This document shows, in pieces, positions 27,092 through 33,000 of a stretch of DNA of 64,000 nucleotides. The number at the start of each line of letters is the position of its first letter. Within the stretch, counting starts at the first letter, position 1. The notes under the pieces were generated by a model that saw only the letters and a program-made list of their open reading frames with translations, was not told the DNA's origin and made no database searches. The position numbers and the translations under genes are program-made. Source of the stretch: Macrostomum lignano (Eukaryota); contig NIVC01002873.1 in the NCBI GenBank assembly GCA_002269645.1, forward strand, positions 7,448 through 71,447. Reading direction: 5' to 3'.

Positions 27092-30000
27092 TCAGCGCTG
27101 CAGCACCTCCGCATCCCGTTCGGCAGTCTCGACAGAGTTGGCCGACAGGTGGCTGCCCGTCTCCAGTGAGCCGACCTTGGAGGCAGCCCGCCATTCGGGC
27201 TTCTCGCTGAAGATCTGCATAAGGGATTTATATAATTTCTGTCTGTCTTATAAGTGTCTGTCTGTCTTAGTGTCTGTCTGTCTGTCTGTCTGTCTGTCTG
27301 TCTGTCTGTCTGTCTGTCTGTCTGTCTGTCTGTCTGTCTGTCTGTTTGTCTGTCTGTCTGTCTTAGTGTCTGTCTGTCTGTCTGTCTGTCTGTCTGTCTG
27401 TCTGTCTGTCTGTCTGTCTGTCTGTCTTAGTGTCTGTCTGTCTGTCTTAGTGTCTGTCTGCCCGTCTGTCTGTCTGTCTGTCTGTCTGTCTGTCTGTCTG
27501 TCTGTCTGTCTGTCTGTCTTAGTGTCTGTCTGTCTGTCTTAGTGTCTGTCTGTCTGTCTTAGTGTCTGTCTGCCCGTCTGTCTGTCTGTCTGTCTGTCTG
27601 TCTGTCTGTCTGTCTGTCTGTCTGTCTGTCTTAGTGTCTGTCTGTCTGTCTTAGTGTCTGTCTGTCTGTCTTAGTGTCTGTCTGCCCGTCTGTCTGTCTG
27701 TCTGTCTGTCTGTCTGTCTTAGTGTCTGTCTTAGTGTCTGTCTTAGTGTCTGTCTGTCTGTCTGTTTGTCTGTCTGTCTGTCTGTCTGTCTGTCTGTCTG
27801 TCTGTCTGTCTGTCTGTCTGTCTGTCTGTCTGTCTGTCTGTCTGTCTGTCTTAGTGTCTGTCTGTCTGTCTGTCTTAGTGTCTTAGTGTCTGTCTGTCTG
27901 TCTTAGTGTCTTAGTGTCTGTCTGTCTGTCTTAGTGTCTGTCTGTCTGTCTGTCTGTCTGTCTGTCTGTCTGTCTGTCTGTCTGTCTGTCTGTGTGTCTG
28001 TCTGTCTGTCTGTCTGTCTTAGTGTCTGTCTTAGTGTCTGTCTGTCTGTCTGTCTGTCTGTCTGTCTGTGTGTCTGTCTGTCTGTCTGTCTGTGTGTCTG
28101 TCTGTCTGTCTGTCTGTCTTAGTGTCTGTCTGTCTGTCTGTCTGTCTGTCTGTCTGTCTGTCTGTCTGTCTGTCTGTCTGTCTGTCTGTCTGTCTGTCTG
28201 TCTGTCTGTCTTAGTGTCTGTCTGTCTGTCTGTCTTAGTGTCTTAGTGTCTGTCTGTCTGTCTTAGTGTCTTAGTGTCTGTCTGTCTGTCTTAGTGTCTG
28301 TCTGTCTGTCTGTCTGTCTGTCTGTCTGTGTGTCTGTCTGTCTGTCTGTCTGTGTGTCTGTCTGTCTGTCTGTCTGTCTGTCTGTCTGTCTGTCTGTCTG
28401 TCTGTCTGTCTGTCTGTGTGTCTGTCTGTCTGTGTGTCTGTCTGTCTGTCCGTCTGTCTGTCTGTCTGTCACTACTTTTTACTACTTTTAGTCAGTATAG
28501 TAGTACAAACGACTGTACCTTCTTCTCTCCGCCGCCCGGCTTGTGCTTGGCATTGTTTAGCGAGCCGACCTTGGAGTTCACTTTCCACTCCACCTTGCTG
28601 TCGAGGATCTGGGTCAGAATGGTCATGGCATAAACATAGGTAATGTTTAGTGTTACAAATTGTAATAAAGTGCATGCAGTGTTAATCAAGCATGTCAAGG
28701 AAAACTATATGCAAACACGTATCATGCAAGGCTTGAATAAAATTTAACTCGTGAAGTAAGATGTTGATCCGGATGAGCAGCTGGACAGACAGGGGATGAA
28801 ATGGGGATTTCGTGTCAAATGAAGGCTTCAGTTCCCTTTGCCGACTCATGGGAAAATTTATCGATTGGTCCGAGCTGCATTTCCTACGCACGAGACACTC
28901 GCCACACGGAGAGCAAGAAGCACACCACAGCCAAGTTTCTTCTGCTGTGTTCTTTTCTGCAGCCGCCATTTCCTGACTGGCACTCACCTTCTTGTCGCCT
29001 CCGCCTGCCTGGTGCTTGGCATTCTCTAGCGACCCAACCTTTGACTCCGCCTTCCACTCTACTTTCTGGTCTACGATCTGCGGCGTAGGGGAATGCGGGA
29101 GTTCGAGCTGACATAATTTATAGCGTACCTGACATAATCTATAGCATACCTGACAATAATCTATAGCGTACCTGACATAATCTCTAGCGTACCTGACAGT
29201 AATCTATAGCATACCTGACAATAATCTATAGCATACCTGACAATAATCTATAGCGTACCTGACATAATTTACAGCGTACCTGACAATAATCTATAGCATA
29301 CCTGACAATAATCTATAGCATACCTGACAATAATCTATAGCATACCTGACAATAATCTATAGCATACCTGACAATAATCTATAGCATACCTGACAATAAT
29401 CTATAGCATACCTGACAATAATCTATAGCATACCTGACAATAATCTATAGCATACCTGACAATAATCTATAGCATACCTGACAATAATCTATAGCATACC
29501 TGACAATAATCTATAGCGTACCTGACATAATTTACAGCGTACCTGACAATAATCTATAGCATACCTGACAATAATCTATAGCATACCTGACAATAATCTA
29601 TAGCATACCTGACAATAATCTATAGCGTACCTGACATAATTTACAGCGTACCTGACAATAATCTATAGCATACCTGACAATAATCTATAGCGTACCTGAC
29701 ATAATTTACAGCGTACCTGACAATAATCTATAGCATACCTGACAATAATCTATAGCATACCTGACAATAATCTATAGCGTACCTGACAATAATCTATAGC
29801 ATACCTGACAATAATCTATAGCGTACCTGACATAATCTATAGCATACCTGACATAATCTATAGCGTACCTGACATAATTTACAGCGTACCTGACAATAAT
29901 CTATAGCGTACCTGACAATCTATAGCATACCTGACAATAATCAATAGCGTACCTGACAATAATCTATAGCATACCTGACAATAATCTATAGCATACCTGA

Positions 30001-33000
30001 CAATAATCTATAGCGTACCTGACATAATCTATAGCATACCTGACATAATCTATAGCGTACCTGACATAATTTACAGCGTACCTGACAATAATCTATAGCG
30101 TACCTGACAATAATCTATAGCTTACCTGACATAGTCTATAGTATTCCTGACATAATCTATAGCATACCTGACAATAATCTATAGCATACCTGACAATAAT
30201 CTATAGCATACCTGACAATAATCTATAGCGTACCTGACATAATCTATAGCGTACCTGACATAATCTATAGCGTACCTGACATAATTTACAGCGTACCTGA
30301 CATAATCTATAGCGTACCTGACATAATTTACAGCGTACCTGACAATAATCTATAGCGTACCTGACAATAATCTATAGCTTACCTGACATAGTCTATAGCA
30401 TACCTGACATAATCTATAGCGTACCTGACATAATCTATAGCGTACCTGACATAATCTATAGCATACCTGACATAATCTATAGCGTACCTGACATAGTCTA
30501 CACTATGCCTGACATCATAAAATTGCAGTCTGACATACGATTACAATCCACTTTGAATCCATTTGTCAGACAATAAGTTTGAGAAAGTTTACCATCAATT
30601 CAACATCTGTGGCAGCAGGTTCTCAGCACCTCATCAGCATCTCTGACCAGTCTGCGCCTGTCAAACAGCTCACCTTTCTCTCGCCGCCTCCGGGCTTGTG
30701 CTTCGCATTGTCCATTGAGCCAATCTTAGAAGCCACATTCCACTCCAACTTCTTGTTCTCGATCTGCAGAATTCAATTTCGACAATTCAACTTCGTCGCA
30801 TTTCAAAACAGAAGTTTTGAAGTAAACAGAAGTAAGTTACACGCACCCGGGTTTGGGTTGAGTTTCGAAAAAATTATGAGAATTCAAGATCCTAGAAAGT
30901 CAAGTCTAATATCCCAAGAGATCCCACTGAAGGTCAAGTCCAACATCCTATGAGATCCATGAGGGTCATGGCCAGCCTCCATGAGATCCATGAGGGTCAT
31001 GGCCAGCCTCCATGAGATCCATGAGGGTCATGGCCAGCCTCCATGAGATCCATGAGGGTCATGGCCAGCCTCCATGAGATCTGAGCTCACCTTTCTCTCG
31101 CCGCCTCCGGGCTTGTGCTTGGCATTGTCCAGTGAGCCAATCTTAGACTGCACCTTCCACTCCGGCTTGGCGCTGAATATCTGTTGGAATTAACGTTAAT
31201 TATTCATCTTAATCATCAGCAAGAATAAAGGCTACGCGCAGTGAACTCGCCTTCTTCTCGCCGCCACTTGGTGTGTGCTCTGCGTTGTCAAGGGAACCGA
31301 TTTTCGACCGGGCAGCCAGCTTCTTCTTGGCCTCTGAAAATTATTGTTTCCAGGCAGTTCTTAGGAGCTGAGCATCATGAGAATCCGACAACTATCCCTG
31401 TGGCAGCCATCCCGGTTACAGCCATCCCAGGTGGCAACCATCCCGGTTGCAGCCATCCCTGTGGCAACCATCCCGGTTACAGCCATCCCAGGTGGCAACC
31501 ATCCCGGTTGCAGCCATCCCTGTGGCAGCCATCCAGGTTACAGCCATCCCAGGTGGCAACCATCCCGGTTACAGCCATCCCAGGTGGCAACCATCCCGGT
31601 TACAGCCATCCCAGGTGGCAACCATCCCGGTTACAGCCATCCCTGTGGCAACCATCCCGGTTACAGCCATCCCAGGTGTCAGCCATCCCAGGTGACAACC
31701 ATCCAGGCGACAACAACCCCAGGTGACAACCATCCAGGTGACAACCATCCCAGGTGACAACAACCCCAGGTGGCAACCATCCCAGGTGACAACCATCCAG
31801 GTGACAACAACCCCAGGTGGCAACCATCCAGCTGACAACAACCCCAGGTGACGATCATCCAGGCGACAACAACCCCAGGTGACAATCATCCAGGTGACAA
31901 CAACCCCAGGTGGCAACCATCCAGCTGACAACAACCCCAGGTGACAATCATCCAGGCGACAACAACCCCAGGTGACAACCATCCAGCTGACAACAACCCC
32001 AGGTGACAAACATCCAGCTGACAACAACCCCAGGTGACAATCATCCAGCTGACAACAACCCCAGGTGACAACCATCCAGCTGACAACAACCCCAGGTGGC
32101 AACCATCCCAGGTGACAACCATCCAGGCGACAACAACCCCAGGTGGCAACCATCCCAGGTGACAACCATCCCAGGTGACAACCATCCAGGTGACAACAAC
32201 CCCAGGTGGCAACCATCCCAGGTGACAACCATCCAGCTGACAACAACCCCAGGTGACAATCATCCAGGTGACAACAACCCCAGATGGCAACCATCCAGGT
32301 GACAACAACCCCAGGTGGCAACCATCCAGGTGACAACAACCCCAGGTGACAACCATCCAGCTGACAACAACCCCAGGTGACAACCATCCAGCTGACAACA
32401 ACCCCAGGTGACAATCATCCAGGTGACAACAACCCCAGATGGCAACCATCCAGGTGACAACAACCCCAGGTGGCAACCATCCAGGTGACAACAACCCCAG
32501 GTGACAACCATCCAGCTGACAACAACCCCAGGTGACAATCATCCAGCTGACAACAACCCCAGGTGACAATCATCCAGCTGACAACAACCCCAGGTGACAA
32601 CCATCCAGCTGACAACAACCCCAGGTGGCAACCATCCCAGGTGACAACCATCCAGGCGACAACAACCCCAGGTGGCAACCATCCCAGGTGACAACCATCC
32701 CAGGTGACAACCATCCAGGTGACAACAACCCCAGGTGGCAACCATCCCAGGTGACAACCATCCAGCTGACAACAACCCCAGGTGACAATCATTCAGGTGA
32801 CAACAACCCCAGATGGCAACCATCCAGGTGACAACAACCCCAGGTGGCAACCATCCAGGTGACAACAACCCCAGGTGGCAACCGTCAGCAACTAAAAATA
32901 GCATAACTACAGCGTGTCTTCATTTCCAAGAGAAAATCAAGTGCTCATCAGTCAGCGCACCGGAATCAGCTGAGGCCTGCAAGAATGGAAAATGAAATCT

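Follow-up and report, generated by a model that had tools for sequence, protein, structure and literature searches.

A tau/MAP2/MAP4-family gene of the flatworm Macrostomum lignano with an exon architecture also present in abalone

Gene structure

The window analysed here is a stretch of 64,000 nucleotides (nt) from the genome of the flatworm Macrostomum lignano (assembly GCA_002269645.1, contig NIVC01002873.1, positions 7,448 to 71,447 of the forward strand), and its minus strand carries, from 34912 to 27092, a gene of the tau/MAP family for which we present a nine-exon model encoding 569 amino acids (aa). A preliminary description of the window had drawn attention to the interval 27092–31333, which is the 3′ half of this model, as a tau/MAP gene containing a modular cassette of four consecutive 90-nt repeat exons. 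Exon 1 (33817–34912, minus) provides 1096 nt of coding sequence starting from an ATG at 34912, with an in-frame TAA 30 nt upstream of that ATG, and ends in phase 1 at the donor CCA/GTGAGT (here and below, a slash within a splice site marks the exon–intron boundary); its product consists of an acidic N-terminus, then a PPAAES[AT] heptad array, and then a basic region rich in S, P, A, and K. Two microexons follow on the same strand, one of 32 nt (33071–33102, phase 1 to 0, acceptor cccacag, donor GTGAGT) and one of 16 nt (32961–32976, phase 0 to 1, acceptor ttcttgcag, donor GTGCGC) that encodes ASADS and the first base of the following E, and through them the phase in which exon 1 ends (1) is tied to the phase in which the first repeat exon starts (1).

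The six remaining exons, also on the minus strand, encode the repeats. The first repeat exon (R1, 31251–31333) is 83 nt long, passes from phase 1 to phase 0, and ends at a GC donor, AAG/GCGAGT. It is followed by exon A (31091–31180; IFSAKPEW...GGGERK; donor GTGAGC), exon B (30674–30763; IENKKLEW...GGGERK; donor GTGAGC), exon C (28988–29077; IVDQKVEW...GGGDKK; donor GTGAGT), and exon D (28519–28608; ILDSKVEW...GGGEKK; a weaker donor, GTACAG), and by a terminal exon (27092–27214) that holds a half repeat, a 19-aa tail, and a TGA stop. Translations and boundaries confirmed that exons A to D are each exactly 90 nt long in phase 0-0, preceded by AG and followed by GT, with one 30-aa repeat per exon, and that R1 and the terminal half repeat flank them as had been described, so that the six exons form an in-frame domain of 187 aa, in which a K[IV]GS motif recurs six times at intervals of exactly 30 residues. 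The junction peptides KKIFSAK, RKIENKK, RKIVDQK, and KKILDSK had been read correctly; from the 30-aa consensus proposed for the units, exon C departs at two positions (EWKA and HQAGGG). The reading frame stays open across all nine exons of the model, and the splice sites are intact throughout, with AG at each acceptor and GT at each donor except that of R1, which is GC.

The form with two microexons was adopted because both are matched by the peptide of a public model from the same species (P0241, UniRef A0A1I8FB06, 275 aa), to which the protein of exon 1 is 85% identical: P0241 carries PVSSSLS at the position of the 32-nt microexon, and its peptide through ASADSE is exactly the join that the two microexons produce. 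A direct join of exon 1 to R1, giving a 553-aa model, is likewise in frame and was dropped, as P0241 shows both the PVSSSLS and the ASADSE peptides. P0241 is labelled “DUF4596 domain-containing” in UniProt; a Pfam scan of the N-terminal exon matched no family, and this label was not reproduced.

The ratio of nonsynonymous to synonymous divergence (dN/dS) was 0.15–0.23 (dS 0.9–1.6, dN 0.19–0.27) for the exon pairs A–C, A–D, B–C, B–D, and C–D; these are old duplicates under purifying selection. GC content at third codon positions (GC3) is 0.77 in the exons, and the GC content of the introns is 0.36–0.47. Open stretches of 90 nt bounded by AG and GT arise by chance about 55 times per strand, and only the four exons and the two that flank them match the family. 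The repeat array appears to have expanded through tandem exon duplication. Exons A and B form a mosaic in which the 3′ 48 nt (31091–31138 versus 30674–30721) are 96% identical in DNA, 7 nt of the donor are identical too, and the 5′ halves are just 67% identical, which suggests either a gene-conversion tract or a more recent, possibly partial, duplication.

Family membership and protein architecture

The assignment to the tau/MAP family was upheld by the Pfam scan that the preliminary description had proposed as a check: the repeat domain matched PF00418 (Tubulin-binding repeat) in six stretches with a score of 231.9 bits, the cut-off being 27 (E = 3.7e-70), and among solved structures its best match is tau on microtubules (6CVN, E = 1.6e-30). 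When 1.84 billion representatives were scanned exhaustively with HMMER, 1190 matched, and at the top of these stood Lingula anatina tau (E = 6.7e-144), Nucella, the tunicate Clavelina, the sea urchin Lytechinus, Haliotis rufescens, and the scallop Ylistrum, with Littorina and the nemertean Tubulanus among the lower-ranked matches. A first, word-indexed protein search with the repeat domain had yielded mostly arthropod proteins at 48–56% identity and no flatworm protein; taken alone it would have hinted at an arthropod source for the window, which the 99% identity of a neighbouring transporter gene to M. lignano (see below) rules out. The closest short match, at 68% identity, lies on a 1.3-kb Logan contig (P0027). 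Literature searches on tau in flatworms or in Macrostomum turned up nothing specific.

The 569-aa model has an acidic N-terminal projection (residues 1–110, with 1 K/R versus 16 D/E), a basic region rich in P and S (residues 180–366, with 31 K/R versus 5 D/E), and C-terminal repeats after these; within this layout, P0241 backs the connection between exon 1 and the repeat exons. Taken together, the matches and the layout indicate that the gene is a non-vertebrate member of the tau/MAP2/MAP4 family. With vertebrate MAPT it shares the PF00418 repeats, the K-x-G-S motif, and PGGG, but its repeats are 30 aa long rather than 31–32, and they are without VQIINK, VQIVYK, and cysteine; no VQI motif occurs in the 569-aa model, and no cysteine, hence no KCGS, in the repeat domain. 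In the strict sense the gene does not count as orthologous to vertebrate MAPT: PHF6*/PHF6 and KCGS are absent, its best matches are invertebrate, and non-vertebrate MAPs form the outgroup to MAPT, MAP2, and MAP4 (PMC4815063). The name tau, which the preliminary description had used, does not hold in that sense.

The same description had noted that the two amyloid hexapeptides of tau are missing and had presented the protein as naturally non-amyloidogenic. Their absence is borne out, but it is no special trait of this gene: among the best 147 HMMER matches, VQI[VI][YN]K is present in a single one. K-x-G-S-like cores in these 147 numbered four in 50 proteins, five in 38, six in 27, and seven to 13 in 16, and several of the top relatives carry 9–14 repeats. 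By these counts, six repeats and a lack of amyloid hexapeptides are ordinary for non-vertebrate members, and the gene raises no new question on tau aggregation, since the hexapeptides are ordinarily absent in invertebrate homologues.

The closest architectural comparison is with the tau-like proteins of spiralians. Haliotis rufescens LOC124115086 (XP_048238296 and isoforms), Lingula anatina tau X2–X7, and the Littorina saxatilis tau-like protein contain the same 30-aa, tryptophan-containing (W-type) unit as the flatworm, with the shared pattern I-E-x-K-K-L-[ED]-W-K-x-x-S-[KR]-[IV]-G-S-...-G-G-G-x-K-K, and they too have a long acidic N-terminus, a basic middle region rich in P, S, and T, and C-terminal repeats. 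The flatworm protein is far shorter (569 aa versus 860–1620 aa), is only about 57–59% identical to them in the repeats, and differs in having no KCGS/second-repeat unit, no “KLDFKEKA” 32-aa repeats, and no IETHKLTF...AKPRTD tail. When 44 + 7 homologues were compared with the window by tblastn down to E = 5, no further PF00418-like exon, “KLDFKEKA” repeat, or conserved C-terminal tail was found, and the other matches elsewhere in the window were of low complexity only. All repeats after R1 are W-type units, the last of them a W-type half repeat, and the W-type module seems to have taken over almost the whole binding domain in Macrostomum. Caenorhabditis elegans PTL-1 and arthropod tau are each a single non-vertebrate member with 4–5 repeats, of which at least one is W-containing (KLxW); arthropod tau, at 48–56% identity to the window, has just one W-type repeat and keeps an IFDDKEYL tail.

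Some side observations were made on these proteins. The acidic N-terminus of the flatworm protein (34750–34912, minus) carries a 14-aa motif and DPFDLLV, and similar DLL-type motifs occur in the N-termini of Tubulanus and Lingula; they resemble clathrin/adaptor-binding motifs and may be of that kind. PF00418 repeats were also found in the chytrid fungi Phlyctochytrium, Thoreauomyces, and Geranomyces (P0030, P0034, P0039, P0041, P0042), a fungal homologue having already been noted in Rhizopus (PMC4815063), and unnamed metagenome proteins (P0068–P0070) have at least 10 W-containing repeats, many of them without PGGG.

The GC donor of the first repeat exon

The GC donor AAG/GCGAGT (31245–31256, minus) is the only donor of R1 that keeps both the reading frame and the 30-aa repeat period, and we infer that R1 is spliced there rather than at either of two GT alternatives. 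One of these, CCAA/GTGGCG, shifts the frame, as it does in P0241; the other, CGC/GTAGCC, preserves the frame at the cost of extra residues (ASSLR), which upset the 30-aa period. AAG/GCGAGT is a strong context, typical of working GC-AG introns.

The public model P0241 diverges from ours at this very junction: after ...NAEHTP it continues with N-IQPPRPGVEGAV and then stops, which corresponds to exon A read in the wrong frame by way of the internal GT of R1 (CCAA/GTGGCG). Either its truncation stems from a mistaken prediction at this donor or that copy is spliced unlike our model, and the simplest account is that P0241 was cut off because the prediction program probably could not use a GC donor. 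Truncation of this kind would account for the failure of the first protein search to recover any M. lignano protein with PF00418 repeats. The tau/MAP-family gene accordingly appears to be mis-annotated in M. lignano, either absent from the public protein sets searched or cut short in them, probably because of the GC donor at R1.

Exon design in relatives

The cassette layout, which the preliminary description had treated as a peculiarity of this gene, recurs in other animals. In Haliotis rufescens (L005), the only spiralian relative for which a genomic locus was read, several consecutive 90-nt exons in phase 0-0 are cut between K and I (the K/I junction) as in the flatworm: the five W-type repeats lie on five 90-nt AG..GT exons at 68568–68657, 69031–69120, 69987–70076, 71379–71468, and 73067–73156, and a sixth 90-nt repeat exon lies at 76773–76862. 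Four of the five W-type exons (69031–73156) share flanking intron bases, with TTGCTTTGCCAG before each, GTGGGAAT after three of them, and GTGGGAGG after the fourth, and two W-type exons encode identical peptides, a sign that the abalone exons were duplicated in tandem very recently. In the sea urchin Lytechinus pictus (L006), most repeats lie on single 96-nt exons with the same K/I junction, and one exon of 288 nt contains three repeats; in the beetle Asbolus verrucosus (L004), the same phase-0 K/I introns enclose two repeats per exon, one such exon being 186 nt long. The one-repeat exon cut at K/I is an old design, its junction recurring in abalone, sea urchin, and beetle.

Compared with the exon 9/10 and exon 10/11 boundaries of human MAPT, whose exons 11 and 12 are asymmetric (82 and 113 nt), the flatworm intron is placed two codons further toward the 3′ end. 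In vertebrate MAPT, a single-repeat exon between phase-0 introns can be skipped, as is exon 10 in the alternation of three- and four-repeat (3R/4R) forms. It can also be duplicated within the gene, as happened in teleosts, whose MAPT thereby came to have 5–7 repeats (PMC4815063).

One repeat per symmetric, K/I-cut exon is therefore common to flatworm, mollusc, and sea urchin, and to the beetle in part (K/I introns with two repeats per exon). The M. lignano gene is a new member of the tau/MAP2/MAP4 family with an exon architecture of a kind already present in abalone, and specialists will find no surprise in a known family with a known type of exon architecture and a public model that is apparently wrong. 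M. lignano is a model for regeneration and ageing, and the corrected 569-aa annotation would supply its tau/MAP-family gene.

Isoforms and the reading of the cassette

Isoform sets of relatives differ by whole repeat units that are cut exactly at ...K/I.... RefSeq isoforms measure 1340, 1310, 1150, 1120, 1090, and 1060 aa in Lingula, 1619, 1589, 1559, 1529, 1499, and 1469 aa (steps of 30 aa) in Haliotis, and 919, 889, and 859 aa in Littorina, and those of Clavelina differ in steps of 31 aa. In Lingula, Haliotis, and Littorina the variable units are chiefly 30-aa W-type repeats, joined in Lingula by some 32-aa F-type units, and the Haliotis models include ten different combinations of the five W-type exons. 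It is against these variable W-type units of Lingula, Littorina, and Haliotis, present in some RefSeq isoforms and absent from others, that exons A to D of the flatworm score best, exon A finding its best match in the W-type cassette repeat of Lingula and Littorina. Isoforms that differ in their repeats are known as well from C. elegans PTL-1 (PMC10738917).

We consider it probable that the locus is a nine-exon, non-vertebrate gene of the tau/MAP2/MAP4 family with an old cassette of W-type exons and likely skipping isoforms. Each of exons A to D has a length that is a multiple of three, flanking introns of the same phase, and one whole repeat, so the earlier statement that any of them can be skipped in frame stands, the skipping itself having been a deduction and the “16 combinations” only arithmetic. 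The likeness of these exons to a W-type repeat that is variably included in other Spiralia makes skipping plausible in the flatworm as well, and we rate it as slightly more likely than not that one or more of the four are skipped there. If the gene is expressed as modelled, its repeats would be expected, by homology with microtubule-bound tau, to run along the protofilament and to come off the microtubule once MARK/PAR-1 has phosphorylated the K-x-G-S serine; skipping of one or more of exons A to D would produce isoforms with fewer than six repeats, and these could in turn have a changed affinity for microtubules. For the narrower proposition of regulated skipping, affecting one or more of the four exons, we see the odds as balanced; were it true, the repeat number of the proteins could vary from two to six, more widely than in 3R/4R tau. 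The run of 90-nt, phase-0 W-type exons may be an old spiralian-wide, even bilaterian, module that sets the number of microtubule-binding repeats in the single tau/MAP2/MAP4-like gene, a role for which our literature searches found no description. In any case, the W-type repeat is the unit that has been duplicated and, by isoform models, skipped across lineages, which offers a simple framework for the tuning of repeat number outside vertebrates.

Several results weigh against the reading just given. Two homology searches with the gene's own protein brought up one partial model at 85% identity, with nothing identical and no transcript or isoform in the collections searched, and that model, P0241, a close copy of the gene, reads exon A out of frame and ends at 275 aa. 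The protein is without the “KLDFKEKA” repeats and the conserved C-terminal tail of other spiralian proteins, a derived architecture whose behaviour may differ. Three of the four donors of exons A to D (GTGAGC, GTGAGC, and GTGAGT) are strong, which by itself gives no hint of weak, regulated exons, and the isoforms of the relatives are pipeline models. An appreciable though smaller share of our belief goes to the alternative that all four 90-nt exons are constitutive and encode a single six-repeat MAP, their symmetry having been inherited from an ancestor with one repeat per exon and left unused for splicing. Symmetric phase-0 repeat exons are a legacy of the whole family, so symmetry alone is no proof of skipping, and the near-consensus form of three of the donors, the purifying selection on each exon, and the lack of any isoform of the M. 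lignano gene in the protein searches all agree with constitutive inclusion; what speaks for skipping instead is that the variable units are the same W-type repeat in all three of the spiralians examined with RefSeq isoform sets.

Read to the full, the preliminary description proposes a cassette whose exons combine freely into as many as 16 isoforms, with a tunable microtubule affinity, and a naturally non-amyloidogenic tau, here taken as a special adaptation. Any subset of the exons can indeed be skipped in frame, five such exons are combined in ten different ways in the isoform models of Haliotis, and the flatworm repeats contain neither a VQI hexapeptide nor cysteine; however, pipelines piece some of their isoform combinations together from separate junctions, and PHF6-like motifs are absent in 146 of the 147 homologues, a default state and so no adaptation. 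We find this proposal improbable as a whole, and within it the chance of free 16-way combination is much lower than that of the skipping of at least one exon. Least credible of all, and very improbable in our judgement, is the idea of a recently duplicated genome in which this locus is a copy in decay and is not expressed as a functional protein. There is a second M. lignano copy, 85% identical, whose public model ends early because of a frameshift where R1 joins exon A, the R1 donor of our gene is non-canonical, and its introns are swamped with tandem repeats, all of which would suit decay. Yet the nine exons are open in frame with intact splice sites (GT, or GC at R1), dN/dS between the repeat exons is about 0.2, exonic GC3 stands at 0.77 against an intron GC of 0.36–0.47, and the GC donor sits in the strong AAG/GCGAGT context expected of a working GC-AG intron.

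Other features of the window

Minisatellite sequence makes up most of each intron of the tau-like gene. A (GACA)n array of about 1.2 kb (27255–28470) nearly fills the last intron, a 22-bp minisatellite of about 65 copies (29108–30514) lies between exons B and C, and a 31-bp minisatellite of about 47 copies (31387–32883) lies in the intron upstream of R1. The window as a whole is saturated with tandem arrays, Tandem Repeats Finder (TRF) giving 51 rows at a score of at least 200; examples beyond the three in the gene are at 35304–35795, 42171–45016, 49179–50190, and 50878–51844. Tracts of (GACA)n/(GTCT)n in the window measure 1.0–1.2 kb, and a 24-bp unit in 120 copies gives rise to a spurious open reading frame of 966 aa. 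An Rfam scan of the whole window produced no match and hence no marker of taxonomy.

Three further coding features were recognised. Two large exons of a gene for an MFS transporter (PF07690) lie on the minus strand (9971–10912 and 12702–13352) and are 99% identical to M. lignano A0A1I8I4I9, their other best matches being several M. lignano paralogues (49–61% identity) followed by tapeworms. On the plus strand, 20095–20997 and approximately 21402–22154 encode a GC-rich (66%) RGG-repeat protein with a HABP4/PAI-RBP1 (SERBP1-like) domain (PF04774, E = 9e-11). An exon with a calmodulin-like pair of EF-hands (4096–4455, minus; PF13499, E = 3e-12) runs into a 21-bp tandem array.

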